A stretch of 57,424 bases of DNA, the filler included, from Platydemus manokwari (lineage: Eukaryota): the NCBI GenBank assembly GCA_037951405.1. It is 6 parts of 6 records of this genome, joined end to end, with 100 filler letters (N's around TTAATTAATTAA, not from the genome) between each part and the next. Parts side by side here need not be neighbours in the genome. Positions count along the whole stretch, not along the records: positions 37,954 to 47,657 come from JBBMOY011214767.1; 5 more parts are not named here. The stretch is one strand, 5' to 3'. The translations under genes and the position numbers were made by a program. The notes under the pieces were generated by a model. It did no database searches. It was given only the letters and a program-made list of their open reading frames with translations, and was not told where the DNA came from. Shown piece after piece: positions 37,954-47,657 of the stretch; the stretch's first letter is position 1; each line of letters begins with the position of its first letter.

Positions 37954-38027
37954 TGGGCGGCATGTCGTCTTCTGTTGCTCGGATGCGATCTGCGAAGGCA
38001 AAAAAGCATACAAATTGTGATTAGGCG

Positions 38028-38094
38028 CCGTCCGTCCGTCCGATTGAAGCCATTGCCCTCGTTCAACCTGCTTGATCCAGCATTGGTTATATTT
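38028..38094 (-). repeat. Left-arm terminal module (38-nt hairpin block plus CAATC(GGAC)n)
   Basis: The reverse complement of 38057-38094 is identical to 47530-47567. The reverse complement of 38028-38046 is identical to 47590-47608. Confidence 0.95.
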
Positions 38095-40225
38095 GAGGGC
38101 ATGGATGATGCTTATTTCCTGTTCTTGTGTCTTTGGTGTCGCTTGCTCTATCCTTCCGTCGGCAGCAAAGGAGATTTTGGCTGTCTTCTTTTATGGGGTT
38201 GATTTCTAGTGGTGTTTCGGTGTGTTTTTCCTTGTCCTCTGGGGCGTTTGTGATCCAGTCCTGTCCAGGACTTTTTTTTCCAGGTTGCGCCGATTTTCCC
38301 GGCTGTTTGGTTTCTTTCCCGGCGAAGACGCGCTCAGCTTTTTCGAGGATCGCAGCGTAGGACGCTTTTTCTTCATTTTGCTCCGCTATGAGGCGTCTTG
38401 CTTCTGTGAGTTCCGCTAGGGCCCTCTGGAAATCCGCGGCTACCTTCGGATTTATTTCTGTTTCCTCCTCCGTGCTCGTGTTCTCTGCTGAGGCCTCTTC
38501 TTCTGATGTGGTGTCTTCTGTTTGGGTTTTGTGGATAATGTCTTTCTGCTTCTCGATGATCTGTCTTTCCTCTTTGATTGATGTTAGCAGCGTCTCGGTC
38601 GTCTCCTTGATCTTGTTCATTCTGGCGACCTCCTTTTTGATATTTTGTAGGATTGACTCATGCTCTCCTTTATCTTGGTCTTGTTTCCTCATGAGGGCTT
38701 CTTTTGCTTCCAGCAGTAGTCTTATTTCCTCCTTCAGTGCTTGTCTTTCTCCACGTATTCCTTTGAGGATTGCCTCGTTTTCCGTCTTAACTTGTGTCAG
38801 CTTGGCGACTTCTTGCTGGACCTGGATTTGCGCTGCTAATATTTCCTGCAGCATTTTTTCGGTGTCTTCGCTGTTGTCTTGTCTTGAGGCGTTCTCCTTG
38901 TCTGTTACTTTCTCTGTCATCCTTTCTAGCTGCTCCTTGAGGTCCTTGACTTCCTTTTGTAGTGCAGTTTTTTCCGTCTGGGTGATGCCCCAGGCTGCCT
39001 CTGTCCTGCTCCGAGCTTCTTTGAATGGTATATTTTCCATGGTGGATAGCTTGAGCGTTTCTTTGCACTGTTGCAGGTAGGGGCAGCCCAGGTATCGGGC
39101 TCCGTGGGCTCCCAGGCAGTTGGCGCACTTCCGGTTGGTGTTGGCCTTCCGGTAGTCCTCATCTTTCTTGGCCAGTGGGCAGTCGTTGTAGCTGTGGGCC
39201 TCGGCGCAGTACCTGCAGACTTCCGGTCCACGACAGCTGGGTCTTGTGTGTCCTGCTTTAAGGCATCTGGAGCACTGTATTACTCTCGGGATGAGTCGCT
39301 CCGGCTGTTGTTGTCTTCTGTAGAAGTTGATCTTGTCTGGGATTTCACATCCCTCTGTTGAGATGATGGCCACCGTCGTCGGGGTGTTATTTCTGGTGGT
39401 GATTCTCTCTGCAGTCTTGAAGACGAGGTGCGGGTTGTCTTTTTGGAGTTGTTTCTTGATATCGTCGTTGCTGAGTTGCGTGGGGATCCTCTTGATCACC
39501 CACCTCCTCTCCTCTACGAAGCTTGTGATCTCGATCTCCGTGTCGTCGTCCAGCTGCAGTATTTTGCCGCTTTTGGCGACTTGGGCCAGCAGGATTCTGG
39601 TCGTCTGCATCTTGTTAATGAAAGCGACGATTCCATCCCGAGTCTTTCGAAGGCTGGCGATGGTTCTCTTGCCTGTCGTTGTTTCGATGAGCGAGATGAT
39701 TTTATCTCTTGTCATTGCCGCTAGCAGGTTGGTGTCTTTGTTGATTTGCCGGATGGCAACTTTGGTGACTTCCTTCTGCCCTGCTTCAGCTGTGGCTTCT
39801 GGTTGAGGTCTGGCTTGAGACTTGTCAGCTGCTGTCCCTCTGCCGGCCGCTGACTTCTCTGGTGATTTGCTCTTTCGCCCTGATAAGGGCGCTGTGGTTA
39901 TATTTTTTGCCCTGAGAAGGGCAGTGGGTGGTTCTGTTTTTGCCCTGAGAAGGGCATTGGGCGATTCTGCATCAGAACCTTGTGGCGGTGTCCCAGGAGA
40001 CTCACTGCTCTCTGGGGCGGGAGTTTCCGCTGGTCGCCCTGATAAGGGCGTCGTGGTTATATTTTCTGCCCTGATAAGGGCAGTGGGCGGTTCGATGTCC
40101 GAACCATTAGAAGGTTGGTTTGGCGGCCCGCTTGAAGCTGGGCTGCAAGCGGTCGCTGGCTTGCTTGTGGCTTGAGTCCCCCTCGTCGCCGCCGGCCGTT
40201 TTCCTTTTCCTCTTGACTTGGACAT
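38087..40225 (-). CDS. Gag-like ORF1 paralog (three CCHC knuckles, long coiled coil); frame open to 40396, likely start MSKSRGKGKR at 40225 (712 aa)
   Basis: VIQCSRCLKAGHTRPSC...CRYCAEAHSYNDC...CANCLGAHGARYLGC is preceded by an RRM-like VIKRIP...AERI region. No pol frame follows. The ATG at 40396 lies upstream of the minus-strand TATA box (40348-40354), so the 40225 start is preferred. Confidence 0.88.
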   Translation of the reverse strand: MSKSRGKGKRPAATRGTQATSKPATACSPASSGPPNQPSNGSDIEPPTALIRAENITTTPLSGRPAETPAPESSESPGTPPQGSDAESPNALLRAKTEPPTALLRAKNITTAPLSGRKSKSPEKSAAGRGTAADKSQARPQPEATAEAGQKEVTKVAIRQINKDTNLLAAMTRDKIISLIETTTGKRTIASLRKTRDGIVAFINKMQTTRILLAQVAKSGKILQLDDDTEIEITSFVEERRWVIKRIPTQLSNDDIKKQLQKDNPHLVFKTAERITTRNNTPTTVAIISTEGCEIPDKINFYRRQQQPERLIPRVIQCSRCLKAGHTRPSCRGPEVCRYCAEAHSYNDCPLAKKDEDYRKANTNRKCANCLGAHGARYLGCPYLQQCKETLKLSTMENIPFKEARSRTEAAWGITQTEKTALQKEVKDLKEQLERMTEKVTDKENASRQDNSEDTEKMLQEILAAQIQVQQEVAKLTQVKTENEAILKGIRGERQALKEEIRLLLEAKEALMRKQDQDKGEHESILQNIKKEVARMNKIKETTETLLTSIKEERQIIEKQKDIIHKTQTEDTTSEEEASAENTSTEEETEINPKVAADFQRALAELTEARRLIAEQNEEKASYAAILEKAERVFAGKETKQPGKSAQPGKKSPGQDWITNAPEDKEKHTETPLEINPIKEDSQNLLCCRRKDRASDTKDTRTGNKHHPCPQI
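39876..40082 (-). repeat. Five 16-nt hairpins YGCCCT-TMTC-AGGGCR
   Basis: Copies at 39876-39891, 39908-39923, 39941-39956, 40035-40050 and 40067-40082. The outer pair covaries between C-G and T-A. Confidence 0.92.
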
Positions 40226-40347
40226 ATTTTCCGGTATTGTGCAATCGTGGCTGGCTGCCAATGGTGTAGCACGTCTGTCTCCGCTGAGCGCTGAGAAGCA
40301 CTGTGTGTGTGATTGAGGATGTCTCAGAATCGCCGCCGATATCGGAG

Positions 40348-40469
40348 TTTTATACCTCGGCGACGAGGAAGACGAAACGGGCGGTTGCGACTGCATGCGT
40401 GTTTCTAGCGATTTGATTGGTTGTGCCGAATTCGTCCTTTTCCTCGTCCTTTCCGAGCTCGTATATAAA
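40348..40469. promoter_or_regulatory. Putative mirror-symmetric bidirectional Pol II promoter
   Basis: TATAAAA on minus (40348-40354), TATATAAA on plus (40462-40469), ATTGG (CCAAT box) at 40416-40420. Inverted sub-motifs: CTCGG/CCGAG, GACGAGGAA/TTCCTCGTC, GACGAA/TTCGTC. Confidence 0.7.
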
Positions 40470-40931
40470 GCCGGTAAAGGTGCCGTTTTTTTACAACTAC
40501 ATCAGACATCGTGCTTTGCATCCCATGTGCTTGGCAGCGTTTACCCATTCAAGGGGCCCTGAAATATTCAGACGGATTGTGTTTGCTTCTTGCTGGATCT
40601 TACTTTGATGTGTACTTTGTGGCGGATTTTGTGACTTCAGTGATGTTTCAGTGAATTTCGAGTGCGGCGAGCGAAGCGGAGCGGTTCGTAAGTAGGCAAT
40701 AATTCAATATATACTTTAAACCTAGGTAAAATAACTAGCCATAGCCTTAGCCTTAGCACTAACTAAATAGACAATCTGTAACTGCTAACATAAATAACAT
40801 CGCTAACTATTAAATAATTAAACAAGATAAATATATAAAACAGGAATAACTAGTCAAGAAGCTAATTAGGTAATCATAGCTTAAAAGCAAAACTTATTAA
40901 CTACTCAAAGACAAGATTAGCAACGGTAACC

Positions 40932-42563
40932 ATGCCCCCCACTACTAGAGGCAAATCTGTGGAGAAAGTTGCACCAGCAAAAAGTCAGGAAAGGACAAAC
41001 GGTGTGGCTAAACAACCCAGACCGCGGACGGTGAAGCCCATCCCCGAACTTCCGGAGGAAGTCCGGCAGGAAAAAGTAAAAGAACAGAGGGACAAAAGAA
41101 CGGAAGGACTACTGATCCGCGTGACACAATTGGAAGGAGGGGAGTGCCGCCTAACATCAATAGGTAAAAAGGCGGCAATCAATGTACTGGAAGGCGGACT
41201 CGGGACTCGAGCGATAAGAATCATCTCATTCAACCCAGATAAATCGATGACAATAACACCTAACAGAGGCTCGCCAGTAGATAAAATTATAGACAAAATA
41301 GTAAAACAGGACGGACCAGAAACCATGGACCTCCAAACACATGGAATCAGGATTAAACTTGAACTCGTTCCTCCAACATCAAAGTTCGTGATAAAAGGAA
41401 TAAACCCGACGACGAAAATAGACAAGATCCAAGAGGAATTAACAGCTGAAAACCCGAAGGTGAAGTTCGTCAATGTTGAAAGGCTGTATGGAAGCAACGG
41501 CATAACCACGTCGATAATAGTCGCAGTATGTGAGAGCGCAGATACTCCACACAGTATAAGATACATGGGGAGGGAGAAATACACTGAAAATTTCATTCCC
41601 CCCGTAATCCAATGCGCCAAATGCAACAAATTTGGACACACGAAAAACGTATGTCGGGCAACCCACCCGACTTGCAAATTTTGCAGCGGACAACACTGGC
41701 ACGGGGACTGCCGCTATGCGAAGGAAGATAAAGACTATAAGCTGAAAAACAAAAATAGGAGGTGCTCCAATTGCCAAGGGAACCACGGAGCCAGATTTGG
41801 CGGATGCCCGGCCCTCAAGCTGACAAAACTGGCCTGGAGAGAAGCCAACCTAACCAACACATCAATGCGGATCACCAAGTGGAGACAAGAAAACACGAAA
41901 AATCTACCGGAAACACAATCAGAAGTAAGAATCATTCAGGCCGAGATGGCAAACATAAAGAATAAGCTAAGTAGCGAACATCCAACAGACGCAAAAAGGG
42001 ACCAAAACAAAAACGGGAGAGAAAACCCTGCAACCCCTAACTCGGAACAAACGAAAGAAATAGTAACACAATGGAAAGCAACAGCAACGGAAATAGCAAA
42101 AGTGAAAAAAGACACAAAGTCAACAGAAGAAAGACTTACTAAGCTAAATAAGAACATAGAAGAAGCAGCCAACAGAATGGAGCAGGCTAAAAAGGAGATG
42201 ATGGATATGAAAGCAGATATCACAATAATGATTGAAGAAGGGAAAAAAGAACTCAAGCAGCTAGCCGACAATATAAAAAACGATTTGGCAGCCAAAGACC
42301 AAGCCACACAGGAGGCACTAGGAGGAAACTCGAATTGGCAAAACGAAGTTGCTCAAACCTTGAGAGGAATCAAGGAAAGACTCAACCAACAGGCGGCAGA
42401 GCTCAGAGAGACAAAAAGAGAAACAGCAGGTATGATACAAGAAGCAGTGGCGTTCGCCACGGGCAGGAGAGCCAACCCAGCATGGAAAGTGGCGGAGGAG
42501 GAAGAAGAAACAACTGAGGAGAGCAGCACAGCAACAGAGGATACAGAGGGAGAAGAAAACTAA
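40932..42563 (+). CDS. LINE ORF1, gag-like nucleic-acid-binding protein (three CCHC knuckles plus coiled coil)
   Basis: VIQCAKCNKFGHTKNVC...CKFCSGQHWHGDC...CSNCQGNHGARFGGC. It lies 41 nt upstream of ORF2. Confidence 0.93.
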   Translation: MPPTTRGKSVEKVAPAKSQERTNGVAKQPRPRTVKPIPELPEEVRQEKVKEQRDKRTEGLLIRVTQLEGGECRLTSIGKKAAINVLEGGLGTRAIRIISFNPDKSMTITPNRGSPVDKIIDKIVKQDGPETMDLQTHGIRIKLELVPPTSKFVIKGINPTTKIDKIQEELTAENPKVKFVNVERLYGSNGITTSIIVAVCESADTPHSIRYMGREKYTENFIPPVIQCAKCNKFGHTKNVCRATHPTCKFCSGQHWHGDCRYAKEDKDYKLKNKNRRCSNCQGNHGARFGGCPALKLTKLAWREANLTNTSMRITKWRQENTKNLPETQSEVRIIQAEMANIKNKLSSEHPTDAKRDQNKNGRENPATPNSEQTKEIVTQWKATATEIAKVKKDTKSTEERLTKLNKNIEEAANRMEQAKKEMMDMKADITIMIEEGKKELKQLADNIKNDLAAKDQATQEALGGNSNWQNEVAQTLRGIKERLNQQAAELRETKRETAGMIQEAVAFATGRRANPAWKVAEEEEETTEESSTATEDTEGEEN

Positions 42564-42604
42564 AGACCACAAGAAAGCAAGTTAAATCGCCGAGGAAACC
42601 AACA

Positions 42605-45600
42605 ATGGCAAGAGAAAACATAACTTTAGCGCAGTGGAACTGCCGAGGTATTGAGGGAAACCTCCCCAGCATGAGACAACTACTGGGAAATGACGTGGAC
42701 GTCCTAGTACTCCAAGAAACCCATCTAAAGCAATCACAAAAATATAGAAGCCGAGGATTCACCGCTATCAGAAGGGACAGACCGAACAGAGAAGGAGGGG
42801 GGGTAATGATACTAGTCAGGGAAAAACTCCAGATCATCAATCAAGAAAGCTTTGGAACAACCAACATGGAGGGTGTCAGTGCGGAAATAGCTGGGAACCC
42901 AAGGAACGTAACAATAATTAACATTTACTGCCCGGTAGGTAGAATAGAAGAGGAAGACATAAGGGAACTACAGGACAGATTGAAGACTACTACCATAATA
43001 ATGGGGGATTTTAACTGCCACCACCCAGTGTGGGGCTCTAGAAGAAGCAGCGCAGGAGGCAGAAGACTATTGGAATTTATTGAAACCAACCAGCTAACAA
43101 TCCTTAATGATGGGTCCATCACAAGAGTAGATCCTCGGCCGACCAAAAGTGACTCATCAGTAGATATTACGATAGTGACAGAGGACCTAGCAGGAAGTCT
43201 ATGGGAAATAGGTGAGGACACTACCAGCGACCACCTCCCAATCATAGTCAGGACCACCACCAAACCCAGGAAAAACAAAGACAGCACTAGGCCCACATTC
43301 ACGTACAAAAACGCCAACTGGACCAGCTTCATAGAAGAGCTAGAAAGAATAGACCTTAGGAGGAGAGATCAGGAAGAACTAGAGTCATATGTGGACAGAT
43401 TCACAGTAAGTATTTTAAAAGCTGCTACCAAGCACATACCAAATAGAAACATGCCTGAAAACATCAGAAGGGCAGCACGACCAACCACACATGGAGGACA
43501 CAGAAACAACCCAACAAACCGTGAAACAGAGGAGGGTAGTCCGCCCACACAAAAAGACAACAACACACCAAGAAACAAGAATCCAGTAATATGGTGGAAT
43601 AATAATTGTACACTGGCGGTACGAAACAGGAAAAAAGCGCTACAGAAATACAGAAGACAGCGCACAGAAGAAAACTATGAAGAATACAAAGAATACAGAA
43701 ATTCAGCCAACAAAACAATCAAAAAAGCCAAGGAGACCGAATGGAGAACCTATTGCCAGAAGATCAACCCTGACACACCAGTAAGCGATGTCTGGAAGCA
43801 GATTAAAACAATAAAAGGCAGCAACAGGACGAGTAACATCCCCACAATAAAACAACCTACAATGGCAATCACGGATAAGGAAAAAGCGAGTGCATTTGCA
43901 GAACACTTCCATAAAGTTTTCTCCAATGAAAGGACCGGAGTGCAAGAACTAGAGAGAAGGAAGAAATTCTTAGAGGAAGCAGAGGAGGAACCACAGGCGG
44001 ATATTGAGGACTACTATATGGATACGGACCTAACTGTGGATGAAGTGACAGCAGCAATAAGGGAAAAATCAGATACGGCAGCAGGAGCTGATATCCTCAG
44101 CTACACGATTTTAAAAAAGGTACCAGCAAAAATAATAGGAACATTGACAGAGCTGTATAACACCATCTGGAGGACAGGAAACATCCCAAAACAATGGAAA
44201 ACGGCAATAATAGTGCCCATACGAAAAGAAAACAAAGAAGGCCACAAAGTAGACTCATATAGACCCATAGCGCTAACATCTCACATAGGAAAAATCATGG
44301 AAACGGTAGTAAATAAAAGAATAAAATTCCACATGGAGAAAAACGACATATACAGCACGACCCAATCAGGCTTCAGAAGTCAGCGAAACACCATGGACCA
44401 AGTCATAAAACTAGAGAACGACGTCAAGAAAGGTTTCAAGAAAGGAGAAAAGACTATAGCAGTCTTCCTGGACCTAGAACAGGCCTATGACCAGTGCTGG
44501 CGGGAAGCAGCACTCCTTAAACTAAATAGAATAGGAATAGTGGGAAGAACATTCAAATACGTAGCAAGCTTCCTCCAGGATAGGACTTTCAAAGTCAGAA
44601 TTAGAAATGAGGAGTCACAGACCTTATGCCAGGAAAACGGAATACCCCAGGGCTCAGTCATCTCCCCAACAATCTTTACAATATTAGTAAACGACCTAAA
44701 TGAAGTGATAGAAGATGAGAAAACGGGCCTCTCACAATTTGCGGATGACTGTGCCGTATGGAGAAGCGGGAAAGATGTAAAGTTCACCAGGATCAAACTG
44801 CAAGGACAACTCCAACACATCGCGCGCTGGATGGAAAAATGGGGTTTCAAAATTAACACGGAAAAGACAGTCAGCATGGTTTTCAGCAGGAAGAGAAAGA
44901 AAGAGTATATGGACATCAAGATAAAGATCCAAGAGAAGAAAATAAAAAGAGTAGCCAGCACCCGCTTCCTAGGAATGATCCTGGACGACAAACTGACCTG
45001 GAAGCCACATATCGATAAAGTAGTAGAAAAGGGCAAGAGAGCCCTCAATATTCTCCGAGTCATCAAAGGGAGCGGATGGGGAGCCCATACGTCAACAATG
45101 ATAACACTGTACAAGGCACTGATTCGAGGAAAAATTGAGTACGGAAGCATAGTATACGATGCAGCCCAAGAAGGCACGAAGAAGAAATTAGACACCATCC
45201 AAAATATGGCAATGAGAACAATCCTAGGAGCAGGTAAGTGTACGTCGAAGGAAGCCATGGAAGTCGCCCTAGGTCTAACACCGCTCAACATAAGAAGGAA
45301 ACAGCTAACGTATAACTACTGGACCCGGGTAGCACAGGATGAGAACCACCCGGCATTTTCGACATTCACAGAAAATAGGAGCAAATGGGGAGGAATACCG
45401 ATCTTTAAATTACAGAGACCAGCAGGATGGGATGCGGCGGAAGAAATGAAAAAATCAAAAGAACTGGCTAATACAATCCTGGAAATTAAAACACGAAGAC
45501 AAACAGTTCCACCCTGGGAGTGCAAACTACCAATAACAGATAGCAGCCTGGCCACGAGAATATCTAAGAACACAGGAGACCTGGAGGCCAAGTGCATCAC

Positions 45601-46465
45601 CGAGGAATATATAGAAGAAATTAGACGAGACAACCTAATAATATACACAGATGGATCCAAAAATAACCAGGGGCAAGTAGGAGCAGGGATAGTCGTCCCA
45701 CACTGGAACATCTGCAAATCCTTTAAGCTGACAGACCATGCCTCAGTATTCACAGCCGAACTCATAGGGATCCTCAAGGCAATCGAAACAGCGACGGAGA
45801 ACCCACCAAACAAACTAAGCATACTGACAGACTCACTGGCGGCAGTTCACGCACTAGGAAACTTTACAAGAGGAACAAGACCGGACATAAAGGAGGAAAT
45901 CATAACCAAAACCACACACCTTAGAAACTTGGGATGCCAAATCAGCATAGGTTGGATACCGGCGCACAGGGACATCGCGGGAAATGAGAAGGCAGACAGA
46001 GCAGCCAAAGCAGGTATATACAGTAAAGACCAAATCCAAACCGGCCTGGGAAAAACTGAAGGGAAAAGCATCATCAAAACCTACGTGCAAAAGAAGTGGC
46101 GGGAACAATGGAAGGACAGCCCGAGGGGACGACTGGCGCACCAACACCTGAATGAGCCAACATTTAGACCCCAAGTCAAGGAACTAATGAAAATTCCCAC
46201 TAACCAGAAGATGTGGAGACTGCGACTGGGATACTGGAAGGATCGATACGTCAGCCCACTATGCATGCAGTGCCTGGAGACCAACACAATAGATCACTTC
46301 ATGATAACCTGCAGCAACTTCACAGAAGAGCGGAAAGACCTGACAGATTATTTCACAAACATGAACAAGGTAATGACGACCAAAGAATGCCTACATATAA
46401 ACAGCGACAAAGAAATACAAAGATTAGTCAAACAGTACATCAACCGAACAGGAAAGGACATATAG
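42605..46465 (+). CDS. LINE ORF2: APE endonuclease, reverse transcriptase, RNase H, CCHC (I group, e.g. I/Nimb/Loa-like)
   Basis: APE: QWNCRG, LQET, GDFNCH, SDHLPI. RT: YRPIALTS, QSGFR, FLDLEQAYD, GIPQGSVISP, FADD. RNase H: IYTDGS, TAEL, TDS, WIPAH..GNEKAD. C-terminal CMQC..H....C. Uninterrupted 1286 aa. Confidence 0.97.
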   Translation: MARENITLAQWNCRGIEGNLPSMRQLLGNDVDVLVLQETHLKQSQKYRSRGFTAIRRDRPNREGGGVMILVREKLQIINQESFGTTNMEGVSAEIAGNPRNVTIINIYCPVGRIEEEDIRELQDRLKTTTIIMGDFNCHHPVWGSRRSSAGGRRLLEFIETNQLTILNDGSITRVDPRPTKSDSSVDITIVTEDLAGSLWEIGEDTTSDHLPIIVRTTTKPRKNKDSTRPTFTYKNANWTSFIEELERIDLRRRDQEELESYVDRFTVSILKAATKHIPNRNMPENIRRAARPTTHGGHRNNPTNRETEEGSPPTQKDNNTPRNKNPVIWWNNNCTLAVRNRKKALQKYRRQRTEENYEEYKEYRNSANKTIKKAKETEWRTYCQKINPDTPVSDVWKQIKTIKGSNRTSNIPTIKQPTMAITDKEKASAFAEHFHKVFSNERTGVQELERRKKFLEEAEEEPQADIEDYYMDTDLTVDEVTAAIREKSDTAAGADILSYTILKKVPAKIIGTLTELYNTIWRTGNIPKQWKTAIIVPIRKENKEGHKVDSYRPIALTSHIGKIMETVVNKRIKFHMEKNDIYSTTQSGFRSQRNTMDQVIKLENDVKKGFKKGEKTIAVFLDLEQAYDQCWREAALLKLNRIGIVGRTFKYVASFLQDRTFKVRIRNEESQTLCQENGIPQGSVISPTIFTILVNDLNEVIEDEKTGLSQFADDCAVWRSGKDVKFTRIKLQGQLQHIARWMEKWGFKINTEKTVSMVFSRKRKKEYMDIKIKIQEKKIKRVASTRFLGMILDDKLTWKPHIDKVVEKGKRALNILRVIKGSGWGAHTSTMITLYKALIRGKIEYGSIVYDAAQEGTKKKLDTIQNMAMRTILGAGKCTSKEAMEVALGLTPLNIRRKQLTYNYWTRVAQDENHPAFSTFTENRSKWGGIPIFKLQRPAGWDAAEEMKKSKELANTILEIKTRRQTVPPWECKLPITDSSLATRISKNTGDLEAKCITEEYIEEIRRDNLIIYTDGSKNNQGQVGAGIVVPHWNICKSFKLTDHASVFTAELIGILKAIETATENPPNKLSILTDSLAAVHALGNFTRGTRPDIKEEIITKTTHLRNLGCQISIGWIPAHRDIAGNEKADRAAKAGIYSKDQIQTGLGKTEGKSIIKTYVQKKWREQWKDSPRGRLAHQHLNEPTFRPQVKELMKIPTNQKMWRLRLGYWKDRYVSPLCMQCLETNTIDHFMITCSNFTEERKDLTDYFTNMNKVMTTKECLHINSDKEIQRLVKQYINRTGKDI

Positions 46466-47529
46466 AAGTAGGGCACAAGTAAAACAGAAAGGATTAGGTC
46501 AAGTAACGAACCACAGCAAGACAACCTGGCCAGCAAAGAAGTAGAGGACGGTAAGTAACCCCCAAGACGGTGGAACCTAGAAACAGAGAGAGGATCTCCC
46601 AGGTGGAACGAGACCCAGACAGAGAAGAAAAGATGACGAGGTCCCCAAACCGAGGAGAGCTAGAGATGGAGCCAACAGCAACTCAAGTACAAGAGAACCA
46701 ACAGAGGGTGCAAACATGGCTACCAAAAACCAAAGAGGGATAAAACAAATAACCTAAACAACGAATAGCCAAATAGACTAAAGGATTAAAAATAACACTC
46801 AAAATAACTAAGCAAGTAGAAAATCTAAGGAAACGAACAAATAAGTAAACAAACAGTAAACAGTAACAATAAGATAAAAGCCCAGCAAAAGATAGACAAA
46901 TATAAGTAACAAAAATCAAAACCAGGAAAGACCTAGCACTAAAGTAGAACTCAGACTATAAAAGCTAAAATACTAAAAAGTCTATGACAAATAACCTAAA
47001 GCAATGAAAATTACAATCGCGAAATAAGTAAATTTCAAAGAATACAACCTAAAGAACAATATAAAGTACAAAGGCTTACCAAAACGGCCACAGTAAAACA
47101 TAGCAAATTATACTAGAACCTAAAAATAGGCGAAAGGCGGTCTAGCAGGGCACCCGAACAATCTCCCCAGCGACGATCAATGGGGAGCAAACCTCAAGGC
47201 GGCCCTGCGGGATAAAAAAACATAAAAAGCAAACAAAAATTTAAAAAAATAAACCAACTAACGAACTAAAAAAGAGTAACAATAGGCGAAAACAACGAGC
47301 AAAACCGCATAAAGACCGCAAACAAGGAACCGAAGAGAACTCTCGACCTGTCCACAGTGCTGCGAAAGGCCTGGAAGCTACCTCTGGCAAACTGGCAGCT
47401 GCAACCCGGGAGGCACGACGTCTGCTGCAAGGAAGCGATCGACCGAAGCGTGAAGAAACAACAAACGTAGCAACACAGTCAACTCATCAACAAAAGAATG
47501 AAGAAGATAACGCCCTAAAAATACGCCTT

Positions 47530-47612
47530 AAATATAACCAATGCTGGATCAAGCAGGTTGAACGAGGCGGAATTTTTCTTTTTTTTTCCCAATCGGACGG
47601 ACGGACGGACGG
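47530..47612 (+). repeat. Right-arm terminal module (38-nt hairpin block plus CAATC(GGAC)n)
   Basis: AAATATAACCAATGCTGGATCAAGCAGGTTGAACGAGG, then a T-rich spacer, then CAATCGGACGGACGGACGGACGG. Confidence 0.95.
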
Positions 47613-47657
47613 GCCGTTTTTTTAGCTCCCAAGCGGATCACACACACAGTGCTTCTC

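Follow-up and report, generated by a model that had tools for sequence, protein, structure and literature searches.

Organization of the Locus

The window analysed here, that is, the whole stretch of 57,424 nucleotides, comes from Platydemus manokwari, and the contig under study is the 9.7 kb of it at positions 37954-47657. This contig carries a gag-only element on the minus strand (unit A), a complete LINE on the plus strand (unit B) and, at its right end, the first bases of what is presumed to be a second A unit. The features of the contig, with positions counted along the window, are as follows.

37954-38027, minus strand: flank downstream of the A tail, sharing just the 7-nt AATCACA with the A 5' junction
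38028-40313, minus strand: unit A, 2286 bp, with a 91-nt leader, one ORF, 3' module and tail, and no pol
38046-38028, minus strand: A tail
38098-38057, minus strand: A 3' module
40222-38087, minus strand: A gag ORF, 711 aa, beginning MSKSRGKG...
40314-40481, no strand assigned: the larger part of the quasi-palindromic spacer that separates the A starts (192 nt in all)
40353-40346, minus strand: TATA box TATAAAAC
40415-40419: ATTGG, a reverse CCAAT, between the TATA boxes
40460-40467, plus strand: TATA box TATATAAA
40482-40493, plus strand: left copy of the 12-nt repeat GCCGTTTTTTTA, read as a target-site duplication (TSD), its first base 22 nt past the first T of TATATAAA
40494-47612, plus strand: unit B, complete autonomous non-LTR retrotransposon, 7119 bp, defined by ORFs, domains and TSD
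40494-40931, plus strand: B 5'UTR
40932-42563, plus strand: B ORF1, 543 aa, with CCHC knuckles
42605-46465, plus strand: B ORF2, 1286 aa, APE-RT-RNase H
46466-47612, plus strand: B 3'UTR, A-rich, 1.15 kb
47526-47567, plus strand: B 3' module with predicted hairpin, 42 nt, 98% identical to the reverse complement of 38057-38098 in A
47594-47612, plus strand: B tandem-repeat tail (CGGA)4.8, from a tandem-repeat scan, with CAATCGGACGGACGGACGG common to A
47613-47624, plus strand: right copy of GCCGTTTTTTTA, 12 nt, directly abutting the (ACGG)n tail of B
47625-47636, plus strand: promoter-proximal spacer GCTCCCAAGCGG, 12 nt, prolonging the left-A upstream alignment once B is removed
47637-47657, plus strand: start of the presumed second A unit (leader, 21 nt), the reverse complement of 40293-40313, where the contig stops

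Unit B, an Autonomous LINE

Both ORFs of unit B are intact. ORF2 has an N-terminal endonuclease and a reverse transcriptase, with Pfam matches to Exo_endo_phos (4e-17), Exo_endo_phos_2 (2e-24), RVT_1 (6e-39) and RNase_H (1.5e-16); among its relatives, the best share about 30% identity with it and are uncharacterised proteins of the APE-RT(-RNase H) type. Neither these relatives nor the architecture of B, a CCHC ORF1 with an APE-RT-RNase H ORF2, point to one named clade such as I, LOA, R1 or Jockey. The sense strand of B is A-rich, and the element is bordered by a TSD, with no long terminal repeats found on it in a repeat-pair comparison within the piece. Judged by these domains and boundaries, B is an intact APE-type non-LTR retrotransposon. 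Its 5' end (40494) is placed solely by the TSD, and the similarity of this end to the A leader is not significant, its score being reached by 29 of 500 shuffles.

Within the B 5'UTR (40494-40931), base composition turns near 40690 from mixed or T-rich to strongly A-rich, and the same region contains GTAAGT at 40679-40684 and AACAG/G near 40840. The change in composition may mark a 5'UTR intron or the junction of two modules. At the other end of ORF1, one contig of run X2, which comes from a related organism, skips 64 nt over the ORF1 stop and the ORF2 start (42562-42627), so that the ORF1-ORF2 junction is different in the X2 copy.

Unit A, a Gag-Only Element

Unit A encodes a homologue of LINE ORF1 with no pol, and its 3' end is common to the autonomous B. 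The gag protein is 29% identical to B ORF1 over the pre-knuckle and CCHC region (E 2e-40), and a Pfam search gave it no match. An exhaustive search returned 3413 relatives, the best at 42% identity, and the nearest long ones directly precede APE-containing ORF2s in metagenome contigs; A thus belongs to an ordinary LINE ORF1 lineage. Arthropods are the commonest taxon for A gag in a language-model search, and the LINE family is probably of arthropod type. An exact look-up of the gag-A protein found it not to be on record, while a word search gave no match to the whole protein and two weak matches to its CCHC region. The contexts of the relatives do not bear on the junction at the right end of the contig, since none of them carries the A leader or 3' module; these relatives are other LINEs, with at most 67% DNA identity.

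The ORF of A ends inside the 3' module, 60 nt short of the end of the tail. No clean TSD was found for the left A unit, the best candidate being an imperfect 11-nt repeat, CCT(C)AATCACA, that includes an indel. The N-terminal part of gag-A (39873-40093, minus strand) is built of 33-nt tandem units and includes a 60-nt repeat of 92% identity (39875-39934 and 40034-40093); the units centre on the palindrome GCCCTGAKAAGGGC and encode peptide repeats of the PTALIRA/LLRAK type. The frame of A has no stop for a further 58 codons upstream of the MSKSRGKG ATG, a stretch that takes in the leader and the minus-strand TATA box and reaches an ATG at 40396 (38087-40396, minus strand); this extension is probably coincidental. 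In the leader itself, CAGT at 40303-40300 and AGACGTG at 40276-40270, both on the minus strand, resemble an arthropod Inr and extended DPE. The canonical Inr-DPE rule is +28, and the spacing in the A leader is one base off. Together, the two motifs may form an internal promoter beside the upstream TATA box.

The 3' Module and Tail Common to A and B

Although their gag proteins are distant, A and B match closely at their 3' ends. The tails have a 19-nt match, CAATCGGACGGACGGACGG, in the repeat-pair comparison, and the modules of both units give the same predicted hairpin, the fold of which is weakly better than that of shuffled sequences (z -1.5 and -2.3, from two sequences and hence without covariation). 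In each unit, the predicted stem-loop is followed by a short tandem-repeat tail, (CGGA)n. In run X1, the word depth of the 3' module is about 210, some 10 times that of the B body with its modest 12-17, and the module (47521-47567) is attached to four or more distinct upstream sequences, A's own among them; this depth and these upstream partners indicate that several LINE families share the 3' end. Run X2 also carries the module, with a tail of the GCAATGGCGTCAATTGGACAGACGGACGGA type.

A common 3' end of this kind has a known function in other LINEs. The ORF2 proteins of stringent-type LINEs recognise a 3' stem-loop with a short repeat tail and mobilise partners that share the tail (PMC4176376, PMC1636434), and eel UnaL2/UnaSINE1 and zebrafish ZfL2 are stringent-type pairs of LINE and partner (PMC1636434, PMC4176376). 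As in those pairs, a predicted 3' hairpin and a following short tandem-repeat tail are shared here by an autonomous LINE and its partner, and the depth and loose ends of the module place the same 3' end in several other families of the genome. Rather than a tRNA-derived SINE, A is a 2.3-kb protein-coding gag element, and recognition of the hairpin is putative here. By analogy with these systems, A is probably a non-autonomous, gag-only partner of a B-type LINE and copied in trans.

A second comparison can be made with HAL1 (half-L1) elements, which derive from mammalian L1, encode ORF1 only and are non-autonomous (PMC5753468, which cites Bao and Jurka 2010). As far as that source describes them, A is like HAL1 in encoding ORF1/gag alone, without pol, and in having its 3' end in common with an autonomous LINE of the same genome. 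It is unlike HAL1, as presented there, in the type of its gag (CCHC/PRE_C2HC rather than L1 ORF1), in its tail, which is (ACGG)n rather than poly(A), and in its relation to the autonomous partner. Judging from a gag of just 29% identity to B ORF1 and a nucleotide match limited to the 42-nt terminal module and the tail, A did not arise from B by simple deletion. It would instead be a gag-only element of another ORF1 lineage that took over the autonomous LINE's 3' hairpin and (ACGG)n tail, which makes the A/B pair one more independent case of the HAL1/HeT-A strategy.

The 12-Nucleotide Repeat That Brackets Unit B

The 12-mer GCCGTTTTTTTA occurs exactly twice, both times on the plus strand (40482-40493 and 47613-47624), against a chance expectation of 0.09 matches on average with up to one mismatch. 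By our own arithmetic, rather than as the output of a tool, a given 12-mer should be met by chance about 6e-4 times in 9.7 kb and about 4e-5 times within the 620 nt that run from the A start to B ORF1. The flanking bases of the copies differ, with T vs G before and C vs G after, and the repeat is thus bounded on both sides. Its left copy ends 438 nt ahead of B ORF1. Such an exact direct repeat, lying on either side of an intact LINE and touching its tail, has the look of a target-site duplication; we take the 12-mer to be the one left by an endonuclease-made insertion of B, and because the bracketing is exact, B would be a single insertion inside pre-existing DNA and not one unit of a head-to-tail array. 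APE-type LINEs insert in this way, by endonuclease nicking and target-primed reverse transcription.

The first-pass annotation of this DNA had noticed that the 12-mer recurs downstream of the plus-strand TATA box, which the count of exactly two copies bears out, and had described it as an acceptor-like signal, which the direct repeat around B contradicts. A splice-acceptor reading of GCCGTTTTTTTAG was rejected, as the repeat stops at the A and the G is a base of the flank; with the final G of '...TTTAG' lying in the flank, outside the repeat, the acceptor-like look of TTTTTTTAG is incidental.

The same annotation had proposed that B and A alternate in arrays reminiscent of HeT-A/TART, in which case the units would stand head-to-tail and the 12-mer would be a functional acceptor or start signal before each of them. 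HeT-A, TART and TAHRE are telomeric retrotransposons of Drosophila (PMC5537684). In both cases one element has gag alone and its companion has gag + pol, the sense strands of A and B are A-rich like those of the Drosophila elements, and a neighbour may supply the promoter. On the plus strand, moreover, the A leader comes within 24 nt of the B tail, and B has a long A-rich 3'UTR. However, units of such arrays have a single orientation and are added to ends without a TSD, whereas the left A is on the minus strand and B on the plus strand, head-to-head, and to our knowledge HeT-A/TART-type arrays never show head-to-head units. The insertion of B is internal and endonuclease-made, bracketed by an exact 12-nt direct repeat of the kind that end-addition does not produce. 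The left 12-mer is followed by B's own start, without any tail before it, and the sequence ahead of the right A resembles the promoter of the left A and not a 3' end. The tails are (ACGG)n instead of oligo(A), the B body has the modest word depth in X1 given above, the 3'UTR of A measures about 60 nt instead of kilobases, and RNase H is found in B ORF2. HeT-A/TART arrays lie at chromosome ends; the A/B locus is a 9.7-kb contig without chromosomal context. An alternating array is in our judgement highly improbable, and the annotation is corrected from an apparent telomere-style alternating array to a nested LINE insertion with a clean TSD.

The Right End of the Contig

The last 21 nt of the contig (47637-47657, ATCACACACACAGTGCTTCTC) are, as had been claimed, the reverse complement of 40293-40313, with 21/21 bases identical in the repeat-pair comparison. 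The 21-mer has two matches in the piece, and none are expected from 100 dinucleotide shuffles. Outside it, identity ends abruptly, the preceding bases being ...CAAGCGG in one copy and ...ATCCTCA in the other; in the other direction, the length of the match is fixed by the end of the contig and is a lower bound only. Identity at the right end begins at the same base as the boundary of the left A leader, where a similarity of about 80% with indels gives way to 21/21 matches exactly from ATCACAC onward. By our own arithmetic, 21 consecutive matches at 80% identity have a chance of less than 1%. As read from this change in similarity, the ATCACAC base is a genuine boundary of a young, mobile or homogenised part of A.

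The second copy of A is visible here as 21 nt. On these bases and the promoter homology described below, there is a good likelihood that a second A unit continues beyond the end of the contig; the right A could instead be a fragment, or belong to another family with the same leader. The earlier expectation that another gag-A unit follows in tandem stands in part, since the leader start and the promoter homology make an A unit likely, while the tandem arrangement does not agree with a left A and a B that are head-to-head. Among the Logan contigs of two runs (query 41658-47657), none crosses the right end towards the predicted continuation AGCGCTCAGCGG...; contigs from both runs are short, and those of B in X1, with 7 differences from the window, may stem from a different copy or individual. 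None of the collections scanned contained either junction a second time, and no further A leader or 3' module turned up when metagenome, genome and viral collections were scanned for exact patterns.

It is plausible that a repeat caused the assembly to break at this point, and the 21 nt may equal a k-mer-sized overlap. If the last 21-33 nt were an assembler k-mer overlap or a chimeric join, with nothing biological following, this would account for the match being exactly 21 nt long, which is a frequent k-mer length, for its place at the tip of a short contig and for the lack of an X1 contig over the right end. Such an artefact would not account for a 21-mer match that is unexpected by chance, nor for the coherence of the last 45 nt, which form a TSD, a promoter-homologous spacer and a leader, unlike a random join; even a graph break at a repeat would still imply real adjacency of that repeat. 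We therefore regard an artefact or chance match as very unlikely. The feature is real and not due to chance, and its mechanism is ordinary.

The Pre-Insertion Locus and a Probable Nested Insertion of B

The pre-insertion locus was rebuilt by deleting B and one copy of the 12-mer, so that 40493 is joined to 47625. Without B, the right A start is preceded by 80 nt that align with the 80 nt ahead of the left A start, both taken in the sense of A, with 39/49 identities and three 3-nt indels, and the arm-to-arm local score of 40, vs 20 +/- 3.8 in dinucleotide shuffles, was reached by 0 of 1000 of them. The aligned block contains TTCGTC, TTCCTCGTC, CCGAG and one TATA box per side. When the spacer is aligned with its own reverse complement, the score is 36 vs -16 +/- 15 in shuffles. 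Because the right A is preceded by an upstream module like that of the left A, the locus is read as two A units that stand head-to-head on either side of a divergent promoter.

Taken together, these observations are best explained by an ordinary nested insertion and not by a telomere-style array, and we consider it likely that a complete LINE, B, lies nested beside a second, inverted gag-only A. The older structure would have been a head-to-head pair of gag-only A units, the left one on the minus strand (38028-40313) and the right one on the plus strand from 47637, held apart by the 192-nt quasi-palindromic spacer and each faced by one TATA box. Into the right half of this spacer, B would later have been inserted by target-primed reverse transcription, 12 nt short of where the right A begins, with duplication of its 12-nt target. 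Reading rightward from the tail of B, one would then meet the second TSD copy, the 12-nt spacer and the A leader, which is the 21-nt match that was first noticed. The B-type ORF2 protein would recognise the hairpin and tail and copy A RNA in trans. As the first base of B lies 34 nt past the first T of the plus-strand TATA box, this copy of B may use a captured promoter, and transcription from it could give almost exactly full-length B RNA.

Measured from the first T of the respective TATA box, the 5' ends of the elements lie at 34 nt for B, 40 nt for the left A and 46 nt for the right A (in the empty site). That both A copies start 40-46 nt downstream of homologous but diverged TATA modules is not explained by simple random retrotransposition. 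If 5' ends at 34-46 nt from such divergently oriented TATA boxes prove general genome-wide, LINEs that target promoter-proximal sites or capture promoters would be indicated. Two accounts of how the A pair arose fit the data: one A and its flank may have been duplicated as DNA in inverted orientation, the A bodies being homogenised afterwards, or the units may have inserted independently into paralogous promoter-proximal targets. The latter account gains a little from a possible imperfect TSD or microhomology of the left A, from the GCC-containing bases that come after both the A and the B tails, and from an ATG in the left flank.

A reading that departs from the nested insertion solely in the origin of the A pair takes the spacer to be a host bidirectional TATA/CCAAT promoter, belonging to a repeated divergent gene pair, with A and B as promoter-poor LINEs that integrate by preference within the 30-50 nt just past such TATA boxes and are transcribed from them. 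It would account for the three 5' ends at similar distances from two TATA boxes and for the reverse CCAAT between these boxes. Upstream modules that are about 80% alike beside A leaders that match at 21/21 would be young insertions in older paralogous targets, and the left flank, with ATG CCG CCC A, would hold the possible start of a repeated host gene; the GCC-containing bases after both tails are also in its favour. However, its sample is one locus, the insertion points lie at non-homologous bases, the left A is without a clean TSD, and the proposed host ORF is based on 10 nt. A search of the piece found no Rfam family, and so no snRNA, SL or 5S target, and no other known target was found. 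Moreover, the same data are explained if one A was duplicated as DNA in inverted orientation together with its flank and the A copies then underwent gene conversion. We consider targeted insertion unlikely. That A and B are cooperating LINEs without effective promoters of their own, which preferentially integrate a few tens of bases past the TATA boxes of a repeated divergent host promoter and are transcribed from it, is in our view quite unlikely; the promoter would in that case possibly be that of a multi-copy gene pair, with its first codons at the left contig edge. Such cooperation, if true, would amount to promoter-proximal targeting by an APE-type LINE.

In the sense of A, the left flank ends ...GACGAC ATG CCG CCC A at the contig edge (37954-37963), and these may be the first codons of a downstream, perhaps repeated, host gene. 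This ATG is preceded, 35 nt upstream, by a polypyrimidine-CAG stretch, CTTTTTTGCCTTCGCAG.
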